In this document: positions 797 to 61,500 of the stretch, piece by piece
Numbering within the stretch: position 1 is the first letter of the stretch
How the letters are laid out: each line of letters opens with the position of its first letter
Made by a program: the position numbers and the translations under genes
Notes under the pieces: generated by a model
What the model saw: the letters and a program-made list of their open reading frames with translations, nothing else
What the model was told of the DNA's origin: nothing
Database searches by the model: none
NCBI RefSeq assembly: GCF_963921235.1
Contig: NC_086104.1
Span: 121,396,001-121,460,000 of the forward strand
Source of the DNA: Mobula hypostoma
Lineage: Eukaryota
Direction of reading: 5' to 3'
DNA: 64,000 nucleotides

Positions 797-1156
797 CTCG
801 TACCAGGAGCACGGTCCCGTTCCCTCGGAGCAGCAGCCGCCGGTCGGGAAGGTGAACGGACGCCAGGCAGCGGTAGGTGTTAGAGTGGCTCGGGCGGAGG
901 TGCCGGACTTGGAGGGAGAGTCCCGTGCCGATCTCACTCTCAGGTAGGGCGTCTTCCCGCTGGGTTTCCTGTGGGGGCGGGTAGACGACACGTTCTTCTT
1001 CCCCCTCCTCCGTCCCGCCGATCACCCAATAAGGGTAGATTATCACCCGGGGCTCCGTCAGCCCCAGAACTTCGCAGTGCAGCGTCACGTTGGAGCCACT
1101 CGGGACCTCCAACCTCCGAGGCCACTGGGACACGTAGAGGGTGGCGAGCGAGATGT
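797..1156 (-). CDS. Ig V-domain exon with J-like GNGT motif (NKp30/CD28-family-like), left inverted paralog
   Basis: On the - strand: acceptor tgtgttacag|AC and donor CGAG|gtgagt. The exon is 360 nt, phase 1-1 and open. It carries LHC (B-strand Cys), PYW, TYRC and RGNGTVLLV. Confidence 0.9.
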
Positions 1157-1680: not shown

Positions 1681-3456
1681 TTAAACTAGAGTTTCAGGGG
1701 AGGGAACCAGAGTGTTAGAGCAGATAGTGAGGTGGAGGAGGATAAAAGTCATGCGAGAACTGCAAGTATAGTGCATGGAGTAAAGCCAGATCTAACATAT
1801 AAACATGCTTTGAGGAAAGAGAAACAGAATAAAGGGTGTAAAGGTAGTAAGGTAGAAGGGCTAAAGTGCGTGTACTTCAATGCAAGAAGCATCAGGAACA
1901 AAGGTGATGAACTGAGAGCTTGGAAACATGCATTGAATTATGATGTCGTCGTCTTTACTAGACTTGGCTGGCACCAGGGCAGGAATGGATTCTCAATATT
2001 CCTGGATTTCAGTGCTTTCAATGCAATGGGGTGGGGAGGGGGCGGGAATGGGAGGCAGGGTGACATTAATGGTCAGGGATACTATTACAGGTACAGAAAG
2101 GGTGGGTAATGTAGCAGATCCTCTTTTGAGTCAGTATTGGTTGAAGTCAGGAACAGGAAGGGAGCAGTTACTCTATTGGGAGTATTCTATAGGCCCCCTG
2201 GTAGCAGCAGAGATACCGAGAAGCAGATTGGGAGGCAGATTTTGGAAAGGTGCAAAAATAACAGGGTTGTTATCATGGGTGACTCTAACTTCTCTAATAT
2301 TGATTGGCACCTGATTAGTTCCAGTGGTTTAGACGGGGCAGAGTTTGTTAAGTGCGTCCAGGATGGATTCCTGTCACAGTATGTGGACAGGCCGACCAGG
2401 GGGAATGCCATACTAGATCTAGTACTAGGTAATGAACAGTGTCAGGTCACAGATCTCTCAGTGGGTGAGCATCTGGGGGACAGTGACCACTGCTCCCTGG
2501 CCTTTAAAATTAACATGGGAAAGAATAGAATCAGAGAGGACAGGAAAATCTTTAATCAGGGAAGTGCTAATTATGAGGCTATAAGGTTAGAACTTGCGGG
2601 TGTGAATTGGCATGATGTTTTTGCAGGGAAATGTACTATGGACATGTGGTCGATGTTTAGAGATCTCATGCAGGATGTTAGGGATAAATTTGTCCCGGTG
2701 AGGAAGATAAAGAATGGTAGAGTGAAGGAACCATGGGTGACAAGTGAAGTGGAGAATCTAGTCAGGTGGAAGAAGGTAGCATTCATGAGGTTTAGGAAGC
2801 AAGGGTCAGATGGGTCTATTGAGAAATATAGGGTAGAAAGAAAGGAGCTTAAGAAGGGGCTGAGGAGAGCAAGAAGGGGGCATGAGAAGGCGTTGGCGAG
2901 TAGGGTAAAGGAAAACCACGAAGCATTCTTCAATTATGTGAAGAACAAATGGATGACAAAAGTGAAGGTAGGACTGATTAGAGATAAAGGTGGGAAGATG
3001 TGCCTGGAGGCTATGGAAGTGAGCGAGGTCCTCAATGAATACTTCTCTTTGGTATTCACCAATGAGAGGGAACTTGATGATGATGAGGACAATATGAGTG
3101 AGGTTGATGTTCTGGAGCATGTTGATATTAAGGGAGAGGAGGTGTTGGAGTTGTTAAAATACATTAGGATGGATAAATCCCCGGAGCCTGACGGAATATT
3201 CTCCAGGTTGCTCCACGAGGCGAGGGAAGAGATTGCTGAGCCTCTGGCTAGGATGTTTATGTCTTCGTTGTCCATGGGAATGGTACCGGAGGATTGGAGG
3301 GAGGCGAATGTTGTCCCCGTGTTCAAAAAAGTTAAAAGAGATAGTCCGAGGAATTATAGACCAGTGAGCTATACGTCTGTGGTGGGAAAGCTGTTGGAAA
3401 AGATTCTTAGAGATAGGATCTATGGGTATTTAGAGAATCATGGTCTGATCAGGGAC
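1681..3456 (+). mobile_element. CR1 LINE fragment (end of ORF1, APE endonuclease, N-terminal RT) inside intron 1 of the left receptor paralog
   Basis: Motifs CVYFNARSIRNK, GVFYRPP, MGDSNF, LDLVL, SDH, KSPEPDGI and NYRPVS in the ORF track. Truncated at both ends. Confidence 0.92.
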
Positions 3457-3515
3457 TCTATCACTCTATGGGGAATGGGTCCCACAAACACAGACTCTTT
3501 CTGTCATTTTCTCCA

Positions 3516-3519
<4 letters not shown>

Positions 3520-3598
<79 letters not shown>
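3520..3598. repeat. Compound (CT)n(CA)n microsatellite
   Basis: Directly visible. It explains the SLSLSHTHTH tails in the ORF track. Confidence 0.98.
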
Positions 3599-3601
<3 letters not shown>

Positions 3602-3666
3602 CTTTCTGTCTCTTTCTCCATCACACACATACATACACGTGTCCCGAGCAGTAAGGAGGTTCTTAC

Positions 3667-3712
3667 CCAACAGAAGGAGGAGCAAGATCAGTTTTCGAAG
3701 CTGCGCCCTCAT
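3667..3712 (-). CDS. Leader (signal peptide) exon of the left V-domain receptor paralog: MRAQLRKLILLLLLL
   Basis: ATG at 3712, 15 codons plus 1 nt, then gtaaga donor. Phase 1 matches the V exon at 797-1156 (G|AC = Asp, giving DISLA-TLYVSQW). Confidence 0.85.
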
Positions 3713-3829
3713 CGCCCAAAGTATTTTCAATTAACACAACTCTGAGGGCGCAAAAAGAAATATCTTAGCACAGTTTTGCCGGGCCGAAGGGACATAATAC
3801 CTTGCTGTAGTGAAATGATCTGGATGGAC

Positions 3830-4475
3830 ATGTATTTCTGAACAAATTTCCCTGTCTTTGGTGAAATACCAAATCTCATCAAACTCCTAATGAAATATAT
3901 ATACCACTGCATCTTTGTAATTGCATCGATATGCTGGGCCCAGTCTAGATCCTCAGAGATATTGACACCCAGGAACTTGAAATTGTTTACTCTTTCTTCT
4001 TCTGATCCGTCTGTGATGACTGATGTGTGTCCCCTTGTCTTACCCTTTCTGAAGTCTTTCTGAGATTGAGTGCAAGGTTGTTGCTGTGACACGACACAAC
4101 AAGCTGATACACCTTGTTCCTGTACGCCCTCTCGTCACCATCTGCGATTCTGCCAACAATAGTTGTACCATCTGCAAATTTATAGGTGGCATTTGAACTG
4201 TGAGGGTGTAGAGAGAGTAGAGCAGTGGGCTAAGGACACGTCCCGGAGGGGCGCCGGTGTTGTCAGCGAGGTGGAAATGCTATTTCCGATTCAGACAGAC
4301 TGTGGTCTCCAGTTCAGTAAGTCGAGGATCCAGTTGCAGAGGGAGGTACAGAGGCCCTGGTTCTGCAGCTTATTGATCAGAACTGGAGGACAGATTGTGT
4401 TAATTGTTGAGCTGTAGTCAATAATCAGCATCCTGTCATAGGCATTTGTATTGTCCACGTTATCCAAGGCCGTGT
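3830..4475 (-). mobile_element. Decayed Rex1/Babar-like LINE RT fragment
   Basis: Translation FKFLGVNISEDLDWAQHIDAITK..YFIRSL and the sequence 'cacacggccttggataacgtggacaatacaaatgcc', resembling this clade's RT. Confidence 0.65.
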
Positions 4476-11036: not shown

Positions 11037-13318
11037 AAGAATGCTTGTAGCGTCATTTGAGAGACCAGTAATTTGAAAGACAAAGGGGTGGGGAGGGGAA
11101 GCAATGACGTCATAGCCCTGAAAACAATGGGTGGTAGAAGAAGGAGGCGGAACCATGAGGGAGTTGGGAGAGGGGGTAGAGTGAAATAGGGATAGAGGAA
11201 GGGAGGGGGAGGGAATTACCAGAAGTTGGAGAATTCTATGTTCATACCAAGGGGCTGGAGACTACCTAGACGGTATATGAGGTGTTGCTCCTCCAGTCTG
11301 AGTTTAGCCTCATCATGGCAGTAGAGGAGGCCATGTATGGACATATCTGAATGGGAATCGGAAGCAGAGTTGAAGTGGGTGGCTGCCGGGAGATCCTGTC
11401 TGTTGTGGCGGACAGAGTGGAGATGCTCGACGAAGCGGTCCCCCAATCTGCGTCGGGTTTCACCGATGTAGAGGAGGCCACACCGGGAGTACCGGATGCA
11501 ATAGATGACCCCAACAGACTCACAAGTGAAGTGTTGCCTCACCTGGAAGGACTGTTCGGGGCCCTGAATCATTGCAAGAGATGAAGTGTAGGGACAGGTG
11601 TAGCACTTACGCTTACAGGGATAAATGCCGGGTGGGAGATCAGTGGGGATGGACGTGTGGATAAGGGAGTCGTGGAGGGACCGATCCCTGCGAAAAGTGG
11701 AGAGGGGTGGAGAGGGAAGGATGTGCTTAGTGGTGGGGTCCTGTTGAAGGTGGCGGAAGTTGCAGAGGATAATGTGCTGGATCTGGAGGCTGGTGGAGTG
11801 GTATGTAAGGACAAGGGGAACACTGACCCTGTTGTGGTTGCGAGAGGATGGGGTGAGGGCCGAAGTGCGGGAAATGGAGGAGATGCGAGTGAGGGCATCA
11901 TTGATGACGGTAGAAGGGAAACCACGATCCTTAAAGAAAGAGGACATTTGAGATGTCCTGGAATGGAAGGCCTCATCCTCGGAGCAGATGCGGCGGAGAT
12001 AGAGGAACTGGGAATAGGGAATGGCATTTTTGCATGTGGTGGGGTGGGAAGAGGTATAGTCGAGGTAGTTATGAGATTCAATGGGCTTGTAGAAGATGTC
12101 AGTGGACAGTCTGTCTCCAGAGATGGAGACCAAGACATCGAGAAAGGGGAGAGAAGTGTCCGAGATAGACCAAGTGAATTTGAGGGCTGGGTGGAAGTTT
12201 GAAGTAAAGTCGGTGAAATTGACGAGCTCAGCATGGGTGCAGGAAGCAGCACCAATGTAGTCGTTAATGTACCAAAGGAAAAGTTAGGGAGCAGTACCAG
12301 AATAGGTCTGGAGTACAGACTGTTCCACATAACCAACGAAGAGGCAGGCGTAGCTGGGTCCCATGCAAGTTCTTATAGCTACACCCTTAGTCTGAAGAAA
12401 GTGGGAAGAGCCAAAAGAGAAGTTATTAAGTGTGAGAACCAGTTCTGCCAACCGAAGGAGGGTAATGGTGGTGGGGAACTGGTGAGGTCTATTATCCAGG
12501 AAGTAGCGGAGGGTTTTGAGGCCTTCTTGATGGGGAATGGAGGTGTATAGGGATTGGAAATTCATAGTAAAAATGTAGCAGTTGGGACCAGGGAATTGGA
12601 AGTTATTGAAGAGATGGAGGGCATGGGATGTTTCCTGGATGTAGGTGGGGAGGGACTGAACTATGGGTGACAAAATGGAGTCCAGGTAGGCAGATACAAG
12701 TTCGGTGGGGCAGGAGCAGGCAGAAACTATGGGTCTACTGGGACAGTCAGGCTTGTGGATCTTGGGGAGGAGGTAAAACCGAGCAGTGCGGGGTGTGGGA
12801 ATTCTGAGTTTAGTGGCTGAGGATGGAAGGTCTCCTGAGTTGATAAGGGCGGTGATGGTGCGGGAGACAATGGTTTGATGTTTTCTGGTGGGGTCCTGTT
12901 CCAGGGGTAAGTAAGAGGAGGTGTCAGAGAGCTGCCGTTTTGCCTCAGTGCGGTAGAGGTCCATCCGCCAGACTACTACGGCACCACCTTTGTCAGCAGG
13001 TTTGATGGTGAGGGTGGGATTAGTGCGGAGAGAGTGGAGGGCAGTGTGTTCAGAGGGAGTGAGGTTGGAACAGGAGAGAAGAGTGGTGAAGTTGAGACGG
13101 TTGATGTCTCGGCACCAGTTGGAGATGAAGAGATCGAGTTCAGGTAGGAGGCCCGGGCGGGGTGTCCAGGAGGAGGAGGAGGGTTGAAGACAGGAGAAGG
13201 GGTCATCTATAGCGGGAGGGGAATCCTTGCCAAAGAAGTAGGCTCGGAGATGTAGGCGACGGAAGAAGAGTTCAGTGCCATGGTGGGTACGGTATGATAG
13301 GTATGGTAGGTCACTTGC

Positions 13319-16600: not shown

Positions 16601-18963
16601 TCTCTCAGGAAGGGAACATTTCACAAAAATCAATTTGGCCCAGGCTTATCTCCATACGAAAATCGATGAAGCATCTAAGAAATGGCTGAAATAAATGCAC
16701 ACAAAGGACTTTATCAGTACAATAAGTTGCTGTTTGGGATAGCATCAGCTCCTGCAATCTGGCAAAGGGCAATGGACCAGGTTCTTCAGGGGATTCCAGG
16801 GACCAGTGTTACCTAGATGACATCATTGTCACCAGCAAAGATGATGACGAACATCTTTCTAAACTTGAACAAGTGCTCACCAGGTTATGAGAATATGGGC
16901 TCAGAGCTAATCAACAGAAATGTGAGTTTTTCAGAAAGGAAATCTCATACTGTGGGCATGTGATCAACAAGGATGGCTGACACGTGTCTCAAAACAAGAG
17001 AGAAGTGGTGCTTAGGCACCGTCACCTGAAAATGTGTCGCAGCTGAGAGCATATCTTGGACTAGTGAACTGTTACCACAAGTTCTTGCCTAACCTATCCA
17101 CAGTCCTACACCCACTAAATGTACTATTACAGACAGGGACACGATGGAAGTGGACTGAGAGCTGTGAGAGAGCGTTTGAAGAAACTAAAATACTCATAAC
17201 TTCAGAAGGGGTGCTCGCACACTTTGACCCCTCTTTACCAATCCGACTGGCTTGTGATGCCTCACCCCATGGGATAGGAGCTGTGTTATCGCACAAGTTT
17301 CCAGATGGCTCAGAAAGACTTTGCCTCGAGAATGCTAACTTCAGCTGAACGCAACTACGTACAGATTGACAGAGAGGCCCTAAGCCTCATGTGGGGATTC
17401 AAGAAATTCCATCACTACCTGTATGGTCAAAAGTTTACCCTGTTGACTGACCATCAGCCTCTCGTGTCAATCTTCAACCCAAGAAAAGGCGTTCCAGTGA
17501 TGACACAGTGATGACAGTGATGATTGAACACAAGGGGACCAAGCAACATGGCAACGCAGATGGCTTGTCATGTTTACCACTACTGACTTCGGTGATAACT
17601 ACACAAATGGATTCAGCAGAGGTCTTTCACACAACAATAGGTGAACAAACAGCCTCATTGAAAGAGAAACACGCAATGACCGTATGTTGTCAAAAGTGTA
17701 TGACATCACAGTAAAGGGATGGCCAGCACGTGGAAACACTGTTTCCAGACTTCTCAGCAAGGAAGGAGCAGTTGTCAGTGTGTCGGGGAACAGTAATGTG
17801 TGGTTAAATGAAGACAATCACATAGGAAAATACCATTACAGTTCTGAGGGCCATGTTCGCCAGGAATGGCATACCAGAACAAATCTGCACAGACAATGGA
17901 TGACAATTTGTCTCTGAAGAATTCCAAAGTTTTGTGAAGAACAATGGAATCAAGCACTTTACATCTGCTCCTTACCATCCATCCACAAATGGCTTGGCAG
18001 AAAGATTTGTGCAGACATTCAAGAAAGCCGTCAAGGCAAGGGACAGCGAAAATCAATCACTGCAACACAAGATACACAACTTCATCCTTGCCTATCATAA
18101 TGCAGTACATGCAACCACTAATCAGACTCCAGCGATGATGTTTCTGAACAGGAACCTGAGATCCCGCATAGATCTTCTCCAACCAGATGTACGGCGTGAT
18201 GTGGAGAACAGACAGTTCAAACACTTGAACGCTAAGTCAACATGGAGCTTCAGTGAGGGACAGTCAGTTCTTGCACGTGATTACTCGACTGAAAAGTGGC
18301 AGCCGGGTACAATTTCCGCCATAGACAGGCCACTGATGTATGCAGTGGAGGTGGGAGAGAACGTATGGAGACGTCATGTGGACCAAATCCTGGATGCTCA
18401 GGTGAAAAACACAACACCTCGCCCAGAATCCCCTGACATAGAAGCAACACTCCTGATGTGACCACATCAGCCTCATCTACAGATAAGCCTGTCATCAGTG
18501 CTGATGTACCAGTGGAGACTCATTCCCCAAAGCAAACGTTTCAGGACAGACGTTACCCGGAGAGGCAGAGAAGGCCTCACCAGAGACTTGAGCTATAAAT
18601 GAGTCTTAGACCAAAAGTAAAAAGTTAAAAAAAAGCTTGTTATAATTTGATATTATTAAGTTACTTTGTTATAATTTGTAAACAAATGGTAGGCATTTAT
18701 ATGTTAAGGGTAAACATATTTGCTTAGCATAGTGCCCCAGATTTTAAAAAAACATTTAAAATAAAAGGGGAGGAGTGTACCGTATAGCTTACATTATAAT
18801 AAGTGACTACTTTATGTTTTACTAACGTGTTGTTGCATGCGCTATTAGGCGAGTATTGATCTGTTGTGTGTGTCAAGTTCGGACTTTACCAGTAAAGAAC
18901 CATGAAACTTAATTCCTGTCTGCAGCGTTTTTATTAATAACATAGTTGTGTAAACAGGCCACA
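13693..18963 (+). mobile_element. Decayed Ty3/Gypsy LTR retrotransposon (gag, protease, RT, RNase H, integrase)
   Basis: gag from 15044 (NWVTYIEKVELYC), protease MELDTGS, RT RICGDFKVTVN and YLDD, RNase [15 protein letters not shown], integrase HPSTNGLAERFVQTFK. Matching LTR segments at about 13693-13802 and 18776-18963, with PPT aaaaggggaggag. Many stops and frameshifts. Confidence 0.92.
13862..14865 (-). mobile_element. Solo LTR nested in the Gypsy leader
   Basis: Termini (g)gtcacg...gtcaca (TG..CA on - strand) with a 4-bp TSD ATAA at 13858-13861 and 14866-14869. Confidence 0.65.
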
Positions 18964-42679: not shown

Positions 42680-42953
42680 ATGCTCCCTCACTACCCTCTC
42701 CCTCACCACAAGCTCGTTAGGGACTCCGAGTAGCTCCTACGTGAGAGTCCACAGCGATGTTCGGGGAATGATGGACCTACGGGCTTTGATCTACTCCTAA
42801 TCGTTTAGTTTATCCGTGAGAGATCCCGACTGGGTGCAGCCTTCACTGAAACTGAGATTGGCTCCGGGACTCCCTCCACTTCGCCTTCTCCCACCGAGCC
42901 ACTCTAACACCGACCACTGACTGGCGTCCCGAATGGCAGCCGCTGCTCCGAGG
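42680..42953 (+). pseudogene. Degenerate fourth V exon of the same receptor family
   Basis: Nucleotide match to 45161-45520 (e.g. ccgagtagctcctacgtga; gagattggctccgggactc; ccgagccactctaacacc; ctggcgtcc; gctgctccgagg). Cys codons are lost (TGC>AGC; TGC>TGA at 42918-42920), and there are deletions. Confidence 0.8.
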
Positions 42954-43315: not shown

Positions 43316-44137
43316 GAACTAATTCAATATATAAATAATATTCTCTGCGTGAAAGATCATTTCAATGTGCTGTGCCAGGCAGCCCACTGGGCAGTTTCGC
43401 CACTTAGGATGCCCACAATTTACTAAGATTGCTTTCAAGACCAGAGTTATTTGTCATATGGACGTGGAAATAGACAGTGAAATGGGTTGGTTGCATCGAT
43501 GACCAACACATTGCCAGGATTGTACTGGGCCCACAAATGTCTCCATGCCTCCCGTGCCAACATAGCCTGTGCAAAACTGACTAATCTGTACCCGTACGCC
43601 TTTGGAATTTGGGAGGAAACCGGAGCACCCAGAAACCCAAATGTTTGGGTAGCGACGGGAATCGAACCCGGATTATTCTCGAAATGACGTCTTCCTGCAG
43701 AGTTAAGGTTGTTTATCAAACAATTTTGGTGTAGTATGATCAAATTCGTAGAGAGATTGTAGATGACAGGTTTGCAAAGGGGGGTTTTCAGTTCTGTGCC
43801 AAATTTCAGCAACGTTGGACAGAGGAAACAAGCAGTGTGTGTGTGTGGGGGTGGGGGGCGTGGGGGGAGGGGGTTGCACATCAGTCCTTGGAGACCTGAT
43901 GTACAGATTCGAGCAGGTCCACAGCTCCCTGAATGAGACAACGTGTGCATGGGGTGGTGAAAATATGGAACTGGTAAGTTGGTTTATCATTGTCACAGTG
44001 AAAAACTTTGTTCTGCACGTCAGTCCAGATCATTTCACTACAGCAAGGTATTTCGTCCCTTCGTCCGCCGACACTTGCTAAGGTGTTTCTTTATGCGTCC
44101 TCAGAGCTGTGTTAATTGAAAATAGTTTGACTGTGCG

Positions 44138-44186
44138 ATGATGAGGGCGCAGCTCCGAAAACTGATCTTGCTCCTTCTTCTTCTGG
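44138..44186 (+). CDS. Leader exon of the V-V-TM(K) receptor (MMRAQLRKLILLLLLL)
   Basis: ATG at 44138, 16 codons plus G, then gtaaga donor at 44187. Phase 1. Confidence 0.87.
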
Positions 44187-44199
44187 GTAAGAGAACCTC

Positions 44200-44334
44200 N
44201 NNNNNNNNNNNNNNNNNNNNNNNNNNNNNNNNNNNNNNNNNNNNNNNNNNNNNNNNNNNNNNNNNNNNNNNNNNNNNNNNNNNNNNNNNNNNNNNNNNNN
44301 NNNNNNNNNNNNNNNNNNNNNNNNNNNNNNNNNN
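44200..44334. other. Assembly gap (135 N)
   Basis: N run. It lies at the position homologous to the (CT)n(CA)n microsatellite of the left paralog. Confidence 1.
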
Positions 44335-45160
44335 CTGTGTCTGTGGGGTCCGTTCCCCATAGAATGACAGTATGCATGAAGGGGCGGAGTGTTGGGAAGA
44401 ATTTCCGTCGTTTGGGGGTGAAAGAGTTAGGCTGTCAATGTAGAGAAGAAGAAGTGATATGTGTTGTTGACAGGGGAATGTCATGGATTCGGGAAAGGTC
44501 ATTGGTTACGGGGAGAGGTGCTGGTTGATATTGGGCAGAGGCTGCCTGACTTTGAGCTGTTTTGGACGCCGCATCCGGGTCACTCTCTGACCCGCTCCGC
44601 TCCCTCCCGGTGATACAGACGCTCCCTCATCACACTTGTCTCTATCTTCCCCAACTCTTACCATTATCACTGGTCGTAACGTGGTCTGACGGAAAATTCT
44701 CCCCACTTGCACAAAGATTTACCCGTATTTACACCCTTCAATATCCCTTTAAAACTCTAACATAAGTCATACCCCAGAACTCTCCCTGATGGGTCACTGT
44801 TAGGTATCTGGACAATGGCCTCGCCTTCCCCACACAAACTTGTATTAATCACGATCTACTCTCCAGGCTGGAGACTAGTACTCATTCAACTTCCTCAAAT
44901 CGGTTCCACTCCGGGTTAACCGTTGTCTGTTGTCTGGCAGACTTCCTTTTTATTTAGCACATACCAAGGACGAATCATGTTTAACTCTATCCTTACAATT
45001 TGAGATCGCTCCACGTTTACTCTCTGCCCCTCCCAACCTCTACCCTCGCTACTCTCTCCCTGTCTCCTTGTGTTACAGACGCGCCCTCTCCACTCTCTCT
45101 CTGTACCACTCTCCATGTGTTACGGACGCTCCCTCACTATTCTCTCTCACTGTGTTACAG

Positions 45161-45520
45161 ACAACTCCCTCGCCACCCTCCACGTGTCCCAGTGGCCTCG
45201 GAGGTTGGAGGTCCCGAGTGGCTCCAACGTGACGCTGCACTGCGAAGTTCTGGGGCTGACGGAGCCCCGGGTGATCATCTACCCTTATTGGGTGATCGGC
45301 GGGACGGAGGAGCGAGAAGAGGAACGTGTCATCTACCCGCCCCCACAGGAAACCCGGCCGGAAGACGCCCTACCTGAGAGTGAGATCGGCACGGGACTCT
45401 CCCTCCAACTCCGGCACCTCCGCCCGAGCCACTCCAACACCTACCGCTGCCTGGCGTCCGTTCATCTTCCCGACCGGCGGCTGCTGCTCCGAGGGAACGG
45501 GACCGTGCTCCTGGTACGAG
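45161..45520 (+). CDS. Ig V exon 1 (V1) of NKp30/CD28-like receptor
   Basis: tgtgttacag|AC...CGAG|gtgagt, 360 nt, phase 1-1. Canonical C/W/C, with RGNGTVLLV. Confidence 0.92.
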
Positions 45521-46701
45521 GTGAGTCGCCGGTCCCACTACCCTCGTTCCCCACTAGCTGCCCCCAGTTTCCCGCTTCCCTCCTGGGATCCGATCCCATA
45601 TCATGTTCAGTTTTAATATATATAATTTTCCTGACTTGCTGGGTTAGATCCTAGTCTCTAACCGGGTCACGGGTAGTGTATCTGTGTATCTTTGGATAAA
45701 TTGTGGAAATCTGAGGGAATGAGGGAGCTGGAGAATTGTTGTAGGAGAGAAGGAGGAGGGGACGCCTGAGGAGGAGAGGGAAATGTCACGGATACGGATG
45801 GAATGGGAGGAGGGATATGGGGAGAAGTGGGAGGGTTAAGCAGACTTTGCTCGATTTGGGGCTGTGTTTGCCGAACGATAATTGTTTAAAATGTCGTTCT
45901 GTGGTCTTTCCTGATGCAGCAATAAGCATTCCGGTCTATATTTGCAAACAAAGGGGACAACTGTACACATGTTAAACGACAATAAATTGTTTTACTAGGG
46001 TTATATAAACATGCAATGCAAAAAGGAAAACGAAGGGTTTATGATGTCGCCAAAAACAAACACTTCTCGTCCACTGAACGAACTGATCTGCAGATGCCGG
46101 AAGGAATCACAGATACCACAAACTTTCAGTTCTTTCCCTCTCTCTCTCTCTCTCTCACTGGACGTAATTGTCTCTATCTTCGCTAACTCTTACCATTATC
46201 ACTGGTCGTAACGTGGTCTGATGGAAAATTCTCCCCACTTGCACAAAGATTACCCGTATCTGCACCCTTCAATATCCCTTTAAAACTCTAACAGAACTCA
46301 TACCCCAGAGCTCTCCCTGATGGGTCACTGTTTGGTACCTGAACAAAGGCCTCGCCTTCCCCACACAAACTTGTATTAATCCATGATCTACTCTCCAGGC
46401 TGGTGACTTGTACTCATTCAACTTCCTCAAATCAGTTCCACTCCGGGTTAACACCATGTTCTCTGGCGGACTTCCTTTTTATTTTGGCACATACCAAGGA
46501 CGAATCATGTTTAACTCTTTCCTTACAGTTTGAGATCACTCCACGTTTAATCTCTGCCCCTCCCATCCTCTTTCTCTGTACAGACGCTCCTTTACTACTC
46601 CCCCCTCCCTGTGTTGCAGACGCTCCCTCACTACTCTCTCCACTTCTCTCCATGTGTTACAGACGCTCCCTCACCATTCTCCCTCTCTCACTGTGTTACA
46701 G

Positions 46702-47061
46702 ACATCTCGCTCGCCACCCTCTCCGTGTCCCAGTGGCCTCGGAGGTTGGAGGTCCCGAGTGGCTCCAACGTGACGCTGCACTGCGAAGTTCTGGGGCTGC
46801 CGGAGCCCCAGGTGATAATCTACCCCTATTGGGTGGTCGGCGGGACAGAGGACGAGGGAGAGGAACGTGTCGTCTATCCGACTCCCGAGGGATCCCGGCA
46901 GCAAGATGCTCTCCCTGAGTGTGAGATCGGCACGGGACTCTCCCTCCAACTCCGGCACCTCCGACCGAGCCACTCCAACACCTACCGCTGCCTGGCGTCC
47001 GTTCATCTTCCCGACCGGCAGCTGCTGCTCCGAGGGAACGGGACCGTGGTCCTGGTACGAG
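46702..47061 (+). CDS. Ig V exon 2 (V2) of NKp30/CD28-like receptor
   Basis: Same splice context and length as V1. Diverged C'-D region and an extra Cys (PECEIG). Confidence 0.92.
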
Positions 47062-47313
47062 GTGAGTCGCCGATATCTCTCCCCTCGTTCACTTTTCACC
47101 GCCGCCTACATGATTCCTCCTGGGACTGGATCGCAGGTCCATTTCTGTTATTTCATATATAACCCCTCCCCCAGAACGCTTGGATTGGATCCCAGCCTGT
47201 AACCCACTCCCAGCAATGTTATTCTCTATATAAACCCCTGAACCCTCAGAATACAACCCATCCCTAGCTCGCCTCGGTAAACCGTCTCACTCTGAACTCC
47301 GATTTACTCTCAG

Positions 47314-47468
47314 GTTCTCCTCGGGAGCCACTGCCTTTTTACATCCTGCTCGTCCTGAAGACGCTCGCACTCCTAGTCCTGACCACCGTGTACCGGCTCC
47401 CAAAGAGCAACAGCGAACCCGCGCACCGAGCGCCCCCTGGCGGTCGTTCCGTAAAGTGCGGACTCTGA
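47314..47468 (+). CDS. Transmembrane/short cytoplasmic exon with an intramembrane Lys (GSPREPLPFYILLVLKTLALLVLTTVYRLPK...KCGL*)
   Basis: gatttactctcag|GT acceptor in phase 1. Open to TGA at 47466-47468. This frame is absent from the ORF track. Confidence 0.87.
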
Positions 47469-48629
47469 GGCGACAGGGACAGCGGAGAAAAAGCCCCATC
47501 ACTGCTGGCGGACCCAGGACACTTCCTGAAGTACCTCCTCTTGCAGCCTGGACTGTGCCAGCAACCAGCTTTCTCCCACCGACACCTCACTGTCAGGAGA
47601 GACCAACAAATTTCCGACAGACCAAAGGACGTCCTTCATCGACCCGATGATCTTCTAGTAGAACTTGATGCCCGTCTGTGTGTGACCTGGGAAATAGTCT
47701 GTTTCTCAGAGAATCCTTCGTTTCACAGCTGATGGGGATTAACCCGATCACAGCCGTCCCGAAGGTAACGTGTTGTGGTAATGATAGAGGAAGGTTCCTA
47801 CCGGGAGGAACATTTTCAGCTCAGCCTAGCGATGTCTTTGTGCTTGTTACTGCGATCAGGCGATGCGGCGTTCTGCCGTTTGCTCAGCGATTCACCCCAC
47901 GGCCTCTCGTTCTTAAATTCATAGTGAATGCTTTCATTAGTGTTCGATTACACTCCTTAATACCAATAGGATCGTTGTCACTCATGTTCACTACTACAGT
48001 AATTAAGGAGCTTCCTCACCCAACCCGGCCCCTCCCTCTCCAGTAGTGAAGGCCCTTCCTCATCCTGCCCTGCGGTGCCTGAACCCGGCTTCAGCGCCTC
48101 CATTAGCACGGTGTCTTGTCGCCATTCGGCAGCTCCCATCCACGGACATCTCGATGATCAATGAGGTCGGGCGGATCAAAGGCGCCTTTCACCGAGTTGA
48201 TGATCTGCCGGCTGCGCTTGATGTCCGTTTCTTTGTCTGTCCCTGCGAACAGCCCGGAGATGAGAGAGTCCTCTGTCACGCAACTGCTCGGGATGAACAA
48301 TGAAACACGACTTCTCACCTTTCTCACCTCTCCACATCATTCACTGCAGACCCTGCCGCCGCAAACACCTCCCGTCAATCAATGCATTCCGGGTTCTTTC
48401 CTGCAGCGTCGTCTGATCCATCCATCTGATTGGCTATACATCTGTGACTGACAGCGGCTGGTTCGTTCCCGGAGAAACACTCGCAACGCGCTGGAGGAAC
48501 TCATCAAGTCGGGCAGCATCCGTGGAAAGGATCAGTCAATGTTCCGGCCCGAAACGTTGACTGATGCTTTCCACGAATGCTGCCCGACCTGCTGAGTTCC
48601 TCCAACGTGTCGTGCGTGTTGTAATAACA

Positions 48630-58630: not shown

Positions 58631-60819
58631 CATGTACCCTGAAGCTCTGCCTTATTAACGGACTCCAACATCTTCCCAACTAACAAAGCTGTCTAACTGG
58701 CCTACAACTTCCTTTCTTCTTACCCTCCCGTTCCCTTCTTGAAGAGTGGAGTGAAAATTTCAATTTTCCAGTCCTCTGGAACCATACAGAATCTAGTGAT
58801 TCTGGAAAGATCATTACTGCTGCCTCCACGATCTCTTCAGCTACAACTTCCTGAACCCCAGAGTGTAGTCCATCTGATCCAGGTGGCTTATCTACCTTCA
58901 GAGCATTCAGCTTCCCAAGCACATATTCCCCCGTGATAACGACTGCACTCTGTTCTCCCCTCTGACACTCTGAAGCCTCCAGCGTACTGTTAGTTCCTTC
59001 CACGGTGAGGACTATTGCAAAATACCTATTCAGTTGGTCCTCTATTTCCTTGTTTCACCACCCCCCTCCACCACTGCCTCCCCAATGTCATTTTTCAGTG
59101 GTCACTTTCTAGTCTTGCCTCTTTTACTCTTTATATAACTGTAAAAAAATTGGTATCTTTGATATTATTGGCCAGCTTACCTTCATACTTCATATTTTCC
59201 TTCCTTGTGGCTGTTGTAGTTGCCTTCTGTTGGATTTTAAAAATTTCCCAGTCCCATTTTGCCAGTGAGTTTCACCTCACAGGACCTTAAGAGAAACATA
59301 TTTGGACATAGATAGTGACTGGTTGATCGGGTAACAGACAGCAGCCAATAGAAAGAAGTTGGGGTCAAGCGGACTAGGCTTTTTGGAGTAGGAATGTGGA
59401 GATGCGATCGGGGGTCAGCAGGCTCCGGCATGAAGAGGCTGAGTAAGTGGCCCAGGGGTGGGGCGTGGCAGCAGAGAGAAGTGAGAAGTCGCAGGTAAGA
59501 ACAGTCGTAAAATGTTTTATTTTGCTGTTGACCTTTGGCATTTTTTTCAGTGCAGGATTACAGGATGGTAGTGTTGGATTAGTGTGTAACAATGTTCTTT
59601 TTCTTCTAGTTTGCTTATAATGTTTATATAAGCACCTGTATGAGTTATTGTTCATTGAATTTTCGGTAACAGTAGTATAGCCTGAATCTGTACTTTTGCA
59701 GAAGTTTCTTTGCAGTCTGTGTCATGCAATTGAACCTGACCAGTTGATAGGTAACTCCTTATTAGTGGAATGTCTTATTAACTCTCTAGTCTGAGTTAAT
59801 CTTGCTAAAAATTACAACTTCTTTGGTCTTTGTTCATCTTTCTTTGTTCTTCCTTCTCTCCCTTCCTTGCAGTCAATTAAGCTGTTAACCGTTAATTTTG
59901 TTTTTGATATCAACACCTAATTAACGGCTGTAATTGCAGATTCCAGAGGAAGTTCACAAGAATGATCCCAGAGATGAAAGTGTTACTTATTGAGGAGCAT
60001 TTGATGATTCTGGGCCTGTACTCGATGGAGTTTAGAAGAATGAGGGGGCATTTCACTGAAGCGTTTCAGATGTTGAAAGTCTGAGATAGAGTGGACATAC
60101 AGAGGATGTTTCCTACAGTGGAGTCTACGACCAGAGGGCACAGTCTCAGAATACAAGGATGCCCTTTAGAACAGAGATGAGGAGGAATTTATTCGGAAGA
60201 TGGTGAATCTGTGAAAATTTATGGCTAAGTCATTGAGTTATTGCTGTGTGGGACAGATCCTTGATTAGGAAGGGTACCAAAGATTACAGGGAGAAGGCAG
60301 GCGAATGCAGTTTTGAGAGAAAATAAATCTGTCATGATGGAATGGCAGAGGGGACCCGATAGACAGAGAGAACTAATTCTGCCCCTATGTTTGTGTGTTG
60401 ATATTTTTATTCATTTATTTCTGTCTGTTATCTGTTTGTTTATTGATTGTTAAGATACAGCGTGGAATTGCCCTTCCAGCCCTTCGAGTCACGTGGCCCA
60501 ACAATCTATACCTGGGGTTTGGACTGCCTCAGGGTTCTGGTTTAACCCCTTTTAAGTGACCCCAGCAGTGAGTGGGCATCTCCCCTCCTCCCTCCCTGCA
60601 TCCCTGCCTTACCCCCACTCCTTTCTTGTCTCTGTGCTGCTGGGCACTTGGACAACAGAAGGTAAAGAAGCAGAATGAGGCCATTCGGCCCTTTGAGTCT
60701 GTTCTGCCATTTAACTGTGAATTTCTCCCAACTCTCAGCTCCCTTTTATATGTTTCCTCTCACCTTAAACATGTCTCCTTGATTCCCCAACTCTGGCGGA
60801 ATACACTGCAAGCAAATTA

Positions 60820-61500
60820 GCTGCCCCCGCCCGCCCCCCCAGCCAGAGAAGATACACTGAAAGCTTTTCCCCAATCTCCTGACACAGGTATGGAAAACCC
60901 CCCAGGTGCTGCATTTTGCTTCCAGTCGAACCAAACGCATTTCCCCCGCTTTCAGATAACTGGCAGCTGTCACTAAGGGGTAATTGACCCTGACAGTTCT
61001 AACACCGTCACCAGCCCGCCTACCCAAACTTTCAACCAATCCCTGTCGCTCTCCCTCAACCGAGCACTGCCACTCGTGTAACAACTGAGAGACCCGTTCC
61101 GCCCACGTCTCGTATGCCTCCGCCCCTTTAGGGGTGGACATTATCCCAAAAACCAGGCGGAGCCTGCTATAGCTGGAACATTTAGTCGCAGACACTACCT
61201 CCGAATCAGACCACTCTTTCCTCTCTCTCCTAACCGTATGAACAGCCCATGGCCCCGCCTCACCCGGGGCACCAATAGACATTGGCAGTTCCACCACCAT
61301 CTCGTCAGCGCTAGTGTGAACCCGAACAAAGACCTCCGGGGTACCAACAGCCACCCCACCCAACACGCATGCAGTAATAACCGGCAATCCCACAGAGCTA
61401 CACTACCCTTCCGCCCTCGCAGCAGGCATAACTTAAACAGGCCGATCACACAGCTTCCACAGAATCCGAACCCCGACCATGGCCCCCACCATGTAGACCC
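60820..61500 (-). mobile_element. PNMA/Ma-like Gypsy gag, frameshifted, downstream of the LTR at 61569-62601
   Basis: [33 protein letters not shown] matches the PNMA-family gag capsid signature. Confidence 0.75.

Follow-up and report, generated by a model that had tools for sequence, protein, structure and literature searches.

What kind of receptor is encoded by LOC134350235, a gene with two immunoglobulin (Ig)-type variable (V) exons in the genome of the devil ray Mobula hypostoma? The gene lies in a 64-kb stretch of the forward strand (64,000 nucleotides (nt) of contig NC_086104.1, positions 121,396,001 to 121,460,000), which we call the window and whose own numbering is used throughout. 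A first-pass annotation of the same DNA had described a leader, two V domains, a transmembrane (TM) segment with a lysine, and a short tail, and had taken the gene for a non-rearranging, activating receptor with an architecture different from that of NKp30. The best explanation of our results, which we regard as probable when taken as a whole, is that an intact, spliced, and transcribed gene yields a type I membrane glycoprotein composed of a signal peptide, two tandem V domains of the VJ type, a stalk, a TM segment with lysine, and a tail devoid of signalling motifs.

The two-V gene and its transcripts

Four exons on the plus strand (44138-44186, 45161-45520, 46702-47061, and 47314-47468) together make up 924 nt, or 307 codons plus a stop. 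All three introns begin with GT and end with AG, and every exon junction of the two-V gene is in phase 1. The exon number, junction phase, and length (924 nt, 307 amino acids (aa)) given by the first-pass annotation were thus reproduced, and the translation is letter-for-letter that of RefSeq XP_062911315.1 (P0031, 'uncharacterized protein LOC134350235 [Mobula hypostoma]', 307 aa), a record recovered through a protein search with a stingray relative as query. The parts of the gene, including the strands encoded at the ends of the V exons that resemble a joining (J) region, are as follows.

44138 to 44186, plus strand: exon 1, 49 nt, with the start codon followed by the hydrophobic signal-peptide core; ends in phase 1 at the donor CTGG/gtaagag and corresponds to the N-terminus of P0031
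44200 to 44334, no strand: assembly gap (N) in intron 1, 13 nt 3' of the exon-1 donor
44636 to 45160, plus strand: intron part of duplication unit 1, ending in short repeats of '...tgttacag acgctccctc...'; its pseudo-acceptor is dead (GG, 35 nt from the exon)
45161 to 45520, plus strand: V1 exon, 360 nt, encoding the end of the signal peptide (DNSLA) and a full V-set domain; J-like RGNGTVLLV at 45490-45516
46168 to 46701, plus strand: intron part of duplication unit 2, with an in-frame alternative acceptor (AG at 46661-46662)
46702 to 47061, plus strand: V2 exon, 360 nt, encoding a second full V-set domain; J-like strand at 47031-47057 and an extra Cys codon at 46920-46922
47314 to 47468, plus strand: exon 4, 155 nt, encoding an 8-aa stalk, the TM helix (47337-47393) with Lys272 (47358-47360), a 24-aa tail, and the stop

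Contigs from RNA libraries were mapped to positions 44000-47600 at 90% and at ≥98% likeness; these contigs are short, and rare variants are lost from them. At 90% likeness, the joint between V1 and V2 (45520/46702) was present in 4/4 runs and the joint between V2 and the TM exon (47061/47314) in three. At ≥98% likeness, the former was recovered in runs X1, X2, and X4, and the latter in runs X2, X4, and X6. One X1 contig of 223 nt joined 139 nt from the V1-specific 3' end to 84 nt from the V2-specific 5' end with 0 mismatches. X1 contigs at ≥99% likeness also covered V1 at 45213-45409 and at 45380-45518 (the latter joined to V2), V2 was matched by exact RNA contigs with joints at both sides, and an X2 contig covered 47312-47600 joined to V2; the 3' untranslated region runs to at least 47600. 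Coverage of introns at ≥98% likeness was zero in every run. Because both joints are seen at this likeness without intron coverage, the two-V transcript is real. One finding that the first-pass annotation had named as refuting its model was a lack of transcripts with both V exons; the V1-to-V2 and V2-to-TM joints show that both are included.

The same joints bear on two other explanations of the paired exons. In the first, V1 and V2 would be cassette or mutually exclusive exons, most of the protein would carry a single V, and the two-V form would be minor or a product of annotation. Each V exon has phase 1 at both ends and a length of 360 nt, a symmetry by which skipping one would keep the frame. 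However, every run with a joint showed V1 joined to V2, and no joint from leader to V2 or from V1 to TM was found in five runs, even at a min_share of 1, in contigs that drop rare variants and that minor isoforms may escape; we consider this explanation very unlikely. In the second, the tandem arrangement would be an assembly artefact in which paralogues or alleles were mis-joined beside the gap. The gap does lie 1 kb upstream, in a repetitive family, but the two units differ at ~9% of sites, the 0-mismatch contig runs from V1-specific into V2-specific sequence, and gene models of Mobula birostris, Hemitrygon akajei, and Hypanus sabinus have this build with two V as well, which leaves an artefact barely credible. 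On the basis of the RNA joints, the divergence of the units, and the shared build in other rays, we rejected both pick-one-exon splicing and an assembly artefact.

The gap itself is the sole run of N in the whole window. Because it sits inside intron 1, no reading frame crosses it; the frame of leader and V1 is set by the junction of exons 1 and 2. Both of its flanks were matched in intron 1 of an inverted paralogue, LOC134350234 (3832-3656 and 3493-3458, minus strand), where their order and orientation are unchanged and ~160 nt separate them. These colinear flanks fit an intact, ordinary intron 1 of about the estimated size. We link the leader to V1 in the two-V gene because the RefSeq model is identical, the gap flanks are colinear, and the paralogue splices leader to V at the same position. 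The only leader-to-V joint among the contigs (run X4) derives from the paralogue LOC134350234: it has one Met codon fewer, and 2/5 of the last leader bases differ.

Several further observations concern splicing at the locus. Retention of intron 3 by the two-V gene was rejected, as coverage was absent at ≥98% likeness and read-through would end after 33 codons. Within this intron, a 37-nt stretch (47174-47210) drew RNA contigs with unrelated flanks at 90-95% likeness in several runs; the stretch is a dispersed repeat with expression from other places and not a sign of intron retention. The alternative AG acceptor at 46661-46662, located 39 nt upstream of V2 and in frame with it, would insert a 13-aa linker (APSPFSLSHCVTD) that is closely like linkers found in Hemitrygon and Hypanus isoforms in RefSeq. 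The V1-side counterpart of this acceptor is dead (GG, 35 nt), and use of the V2 acceptor was not seen in the RNA contigs.

Two runs carried variant sequences at the 3' end of the gene. An X6 contig continues past the end of a V2-type exon (47061) with 28 nt coding for the first residues of a C-terminus that is hydrophobic and uncharged. This ending is absent from the window and is that of isoform X3 (P0032) of a third cluster gene, LOC134350233, where it forms an alternative last exon. The family also produces a form without the lysine and almost without a tail, which might be glycosylphosphatidylinositol (GPI)-anchored or non-signalling. In run X3 (organism B), variants at 47361 and 47369, with a change of Thr273 to Ala adjoining the TM lysine, match Mobula birostris RefSeq proteins, and the lysine is kept; to judge from these variants, organism B is probably a manta.

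Domain structure and V number in a shark-and-ray family

Each V exon encodes a V-set domain. The Pfam V-set model (PF07686) scored 32.4 bits for V1 and 30.5 bits for V2 (cut-off 26) and the Ig_3 model 34.6 and 35.7 bits, respectively (cut-off 30), with E-values of 1e-7 to 1e-8 for both exons. In each domain the Cys27-Trp43-Cys96 core is invariant, ~69 residues separate the cysteines, and there are a Y-x-C motif and two N-glycosylation sequons (NVT, NGT). The first-pass annotation had reported a J-like strand, RGNGT.(L/V)LV, in each V exon, and we found it at both 360-nt exon ends, as RGNGTVLLV in V1 and RGNGTVVLV in V2. These ends align with the J region of T-cell receptor (TCR)-alpha and of lambda chains and lie inside the same exon as the V part. 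Both domains therefore belong to the V-set and, having a J-like G strand in the V exon, to the VJ-type domains of the immunoglobulin superfamily (IgSF). The G strand of NKp30 contains GNGT, as do the J-like ends here.

The V exons start with D(N/I)SLA. In V1 these residues are the likely end of the signal peptide, which is probably cleaved after DNSLA; in V2 they are the sole inter-domain linker (~5 residues). Residues 265-283 form the TM segment (Kyte-Doolittle maximum 2.09); Lys272 is the eighth of its 19 residues, and the 24-aa tail contains no tyrosine motif and no tyrosine past the membrane border. The order proposed in the first-pass annotation (leader, V1, V2, TM with lysine, and short tail without a signalling motif) holds. 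An AlphaFold model of one V domain had a mean confidence score (pLDDT) of 67 (moderate).

How widely is this build shared? A HMMER search of 1.84 billion representative proteins returned 24 significant matches, and only two clusters were clearly related: in one the protein is from the red stingray and has several V domains, and in the other it is from the cloudy catshark and has 175 aa with one V. The lower-ranking matches were TCR/Ig-type V arrays only. The catshark relative (P0002, scyTo_0013999, S. torazame) has one V domain, with 41% V identity, and the same stalk and TM lysine; rays and catshark have the stalk/TM motif PRE..PLP.Y.L...K....VY..KS..P without variation. Because this motif is invariant although V identity is only 41%, we argue that the TM lysine is functional. 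Mobula birostris has orthologues of 306 and 307 aa, the longer of which (P0036) is 95% identical to the LOC134350235 protein. Stingray proteins are 85-87% identical to it; genes with two and with three V occur in Hemitrygon akajei, and one with two V in Hypanus sabinus. LOC134350235 has the leader, V sequence, and stalk/TM motif (PRE..PLP.Y.L...K) common to the family. When V1 or catshark P0002 was the query of a word-indexed protein search, only the queries themselves were returned, and there were no called neighbours within 10 kb of the catshark gene.

The devil-ray cluster contains three genes. The inverted paralogue LOC134350234 encodes 632 aa with five V as modelled, and LOC134350233 encodes two V in three modelled isoforms, among them one whose end is hydrophobic and uncharged (P0032) and one with a retained intron and a soluble end (P0035). 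All relatives of LOC134350235 are unnamed in annotation. The inverted paralogue and the pseudo-V that the first-pass annotation had placed around the gene are both present in the window, in the following positions.

797 to 1156, minus strand: first V exon of the inverted paralogue LOC134350234, with 96% nt and 94% aa identity to V1; the first V of P0027, in a gene that extends past the window start
3656 to 3832, minus strand: leader-exon region of the inverted paralogue, 83% identical to 44016-44199; the X4 leader-to-V contig fits here
42683 to 42953, plus strand: pseudo-V, a decayed V exon ~1.2 kb upstream of the start codon, with colinear blastn matches to V1 (65% and 73% nt identity, E 4e-16), stops, and a deletion

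Within the two-V gene, V1 and V2 lie in a 1.54-kb direct repeat of intron and exon that includes ~525 nt of upstream intron. The copies share ~91% nt and 85% aa identity; their exons differ at 32/357 sites (dS 0.136, dN 0.081, dN/dS 0.60), and the intron parts are ~90% identical. Between V copies, dN/dS is 0.4-0.6, so the copies remain under constraint. By these divergence values, the second V is a moderately old tandem duplication under relaxed purifying selection. The amino-acid differences between V1 and V2 are concentrated in the C'-C'' region: 11/18 fall within residues 45-67 (hypergeometric p ~2e-5). A tree of 14 V domains was almost unresolved, the only supported pairs being V2 of devil-ray gene 235 with V4 of gene 234, and V1 with V2 of Hypanus.

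The exon structure offers a route by which V number could change. As each V exon is of phase 1-1 and measures 360 nt (a multiple of 3), added copies stay in frame, and unequal crossing-over would add or remove whole V domains with the frame unbroken. The symmetry of the V exon therefore makes for an accordion-like V number in the family, with one V per gene in the catshark, 2-3 in stingrays, and 2 and 5 (RefSeq models) in the devil ray. The suggestion of an expanding family, made from the window alone, extends to other sharks and rays: the family expands and contracts, with three genes in the devil-ray cluster and genes that, as modelled, have 1, 2, 3, or 5 V.

Some details of the V sequences were noted in passing. 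Residues 47-56 of each V copy (e.g. 45301-45330) form a strikingly acidic stretch, GGTEEREEER or GGTEDEGEER, where the domain varies most. Positions at which V domains typically have the Arg/Asp salt bridge are altered in rays and kept in the catshark protein. V2 has an extra cysteine (residue 210, 46920-46922), presumably unpaired, that is also found in V4 of gene 234; this residue is Ser in the manta orthologues and in contigs from paralogues or other species (T>A at 46920).

Likeness to known V-domain receptors

A sequence search of the PDB gave TCR-alpha and Ig light-chain V-J domains as the best matches, with E 3e-3 for a single query and E 1e-7 to 1e-9 for a family profile and the catshark query. 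The match to TCR-alpha and Ig-lambda V-J spans the full domain, J-like strand included. With the one-V model as query, Foldseek placed TCR V-alpha at the top in both Swiss-Prot and the PDB, in lists interleaved with SIRP, CD7, VISTA, CD79a, PD-1, and CD8-beta; in Swiss-Prot, NCR3 (NKp30) of human and macaque held ranks 11, 17, and 23 at 23-24% identity, among the higher values in that list. NKp30 was absent among the best 60 PDB sequence matches, the best 50 PDB Foldseek matches, the 24 HMMER matches (from 1.84 billion representatives), and the nearest ESM Atlas clusters, and a PDB search with a short J-region query did not return it. The ESM Atlas neighbours of the catshark protein were generic one-V receptors. 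In all of these comparisons, NKp30 was set against the V domains by database rank. The V domain is a typical VJ-type domain: in sequence and fold searches, NKp30 comes out no closer to it than do the V domains of TCR-alpha, Ig light chains, or SIRP. A kinship to NKp30 that goes further than the common build is possible but was not shown by these searches.

Although nothing matches the whole domain better in sequence and fold than TCR-alpha and Ig light chains, the gene differs from them in several ways. Here V and J-like parts are fused in the germline with no recombination-signal split and no constant (C) domain, R takes the place of F or W at the start of the J-like motif, and the C-strand motif W-Y-x-Q is absent. 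Rearranging Ig and TCR genes have split V and J with recombination signals and C1 exons, whereas the exon after V2 encodes stalk, TM, and tail.

VJ-type domains occur in several non-rearranging families, namely NKp30, CD8, SIRP, CD79, NITR, and PRARP (PMC11599192). NKp30 resembles the LOC134350235 protein in several respects: both are type I proteins in which the VJ-type V is encoded by one exon, the stalk is short, the TM segment has a basic residue, and the short tail is motif-less. Lys272 is such a residue, and the short tail lacks both activating and inhibitory immunoreceptor tyrosine-based motifs (ITAM and ITIM). The two differ in V number, NKp30 having a single V, whereas V1 and V2 are spliced together in RNA here and up to five V, as modelled, occur elsewhere in the family (the catshark P0002 has one). 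They differ also in the TM residue, which is Arg in mammalian NKp30 and Lys here (PMC6514059). In NKp30 and NKp46 the TM Arg pairs with CD3-zeta/FcR-gamma, and in NKp44 a TM Lys pairs with DAP12 (PMC6514059). The distinction that the first-pass annotation drew from NKp30 thus holds for the two V domains and the lysine, but its novelty was overstated, the RefSeq model being public and tandem-V chains having precedents.

Could LOC134350235 nonetheless be a true NCR3 gene, that is, a divergent elasmobranch subtype with a duplicated V exon, a B7H6-type ligand, and a CD3-zeta/FcR-gamma adaptor? We treat this as a possible, though not favored, identity. The build is the same except for V number (single-exon VJ-type V, short stalk, basic TM residue, motif-less tail), the catshark homologue has exactly the one-V build, NCR3 appears at ranks 11, 17, and 23 of the Foldseek Swiss-Prot list, and the passages of PMC12227049 and PMC10450919 that cite Kinlein 2021 report eight divergent NCR3 subtypes in sharks. 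On the other hand, no search ranks NKp30 ahead of other VJ domains, no marker linked to the major histocompatibility complex (MHC) was found in the 64-kb window, and the TM residue is Lys, not Arg.

Other receptors share single features. The TM lysine and minimal tail are also found in SIRP-beta, NKp44, and activating KIR, which are DAP12-coupled. SIRP has, in addition, a VJ-type V domain and was among the matches (2jjv in PDB searches; SIRP-delta and SIRP-beta-2 in Foldseek Swiss-Prot). However, SIRP is built as V-C1-C1, NKp44 has one V on a long stalk, and KIR domains are C2-type, whereas here the ectodomain consists solely of repeated V domains. Membrane-anchored chains with two successive V-type domains are known from shark NAR-TCR delta (PMC12227049), marsupial TCR-mu, and JAML, the last of which was among the PDB sequence-search matches. 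Their two V domains are dissimilar, in contrast to the near-identical copies of one exon seen here, whose number varies between genes; in NAR-TCR and TCR-mu, moreover, the V is rearranged and followed by a C domain. Teleost NITR and skate MDIR are clustered, fast-evolving innate IgSF genes with charged-TM activating forms and modular gain and loss of Ig exons. NITR, from bony fish, combines V with I domains, and MDIR (mentioned for skate in PMC3031540) has CD300/TREM/pIgR-type domains; both were set apart by their descriptions.

The other long open reading frames (ORFs) of the window are transposon remains. A 505-aa ORF at 2137-3654 (plus strand), inside intron 1 of the inverted paralogue, encodes an endonuclease-reverse-transcriptase domain of a long interspersed element (LINE)-type insertion and adjoins a long dinucleotide microsatellite (~3494-3655). 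Further transposon-derived ORFs are found at 11216-12133 (minus strand; weak GIY-YIG, Penelope-like), 17934-18461 (plus strand; integrase core), and 60746-61393 (minus strand; PNMA/gag-like).

Predicted signalling and significance of the family

We propose that the protein would be a receptor on leukocytes that binds ligand through its V domains. It would have no signalling capacity of its own; Lys272 would pair with the TM Asp of an ITAM adaptor (DAP12, FcR-gamma, or CD3-zeta type), as in NKp44, NKp30, SIRP-beta, and activating KIR, and ligand binding would produce an activating signal via this adaptor. The term 'activating', used already in the first-pass annotation, is one that we infer only from the TM lysine and the motif-less tail. 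Additional V copies would alter reach and valency and create no new combining site: near-identical repeats with almost no linker would more plausibly act as a rod than as a paired combining site.

A different role, in which the protein serves as an adhesion molecule, decoy, or co-receptor and the TM lysine mediates assembly or retention with some other partner, seems unlikely to us. The sister gene LOC134350233 is modelled with an uncharged end and with an intron-retained soluble end, as such a role might lead one to expect. Yet catshark and rays share the lysine and its motif unchanged at a V-domain identity of 41%, which is the pattern of adaptor-coupled receptors. Doubtful, too, is the idea of a separate, elasmobranch-wide lineage of germline-joined VJ receptors that is not an offshoot of NCR3, with V domains closer than NKp30 to TCR-alpha and Ig light chain and with the tandem V of rays (separated by a 0- or 13-residue linker through alternative acceptors) pairing within or between chains as a combining site. 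If true, it would add a further surviving relative of the non-rearranging antigen-receptor precursor, beside UrIg and UrIg2.

We therefore favor, as the likely reading, an elasmobranch family that is NKp30-like in build and signals through an adaptor. Several points weigh against it. The link from leader to V1 is the weakest part of the gene model: the gap could in principle hide an extra exon, and at ≥98% likeness no RNA contig covered exon 1. Among the short contigs, in a family whose paralogues are 85-96% identical, no single RNA molecule was seen across leader, V1, V2, and TM. The V domain carries YWVIGG where antigen-receptor V domains have W-Y-x-Q, and the full-length AlphaFold model was unusable (pLDDT 39), its V-V arrangement not readable. 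Finally, the uncharged end of P0032 and the X6 contig indicate that signalling through the lysine is not the sole output of the family.

What does this gene add? Its value as a discovery is limited because the RefSeq model is already public and function is inferred; tandem-V chains and modular innate IgSF families are known as well. We found a multi-VJ build on a lysine anchor in unnamed RefSeq models only; none of the literature that we searched describes it. Of the lineages alive today that have antibody- and TCR-based immunity, cartilaginous fish are the oldest, and VJ domains encoded by a single exon are candidates for the target that was once split by the RAG transposon. LOC134350235 gives transcript support to a shark-and-ray family that chains near-identical VJ domains, 1 to 5 as modelled, on a conserved lysine anchor. 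The family offers a simple natural system for asking how the reach or valency of an innate receptor is tuned when exons are duplicated like the folds of an accordion, and which ITAM adaptors were already paired with TM lysines in early jawed vertebrates.

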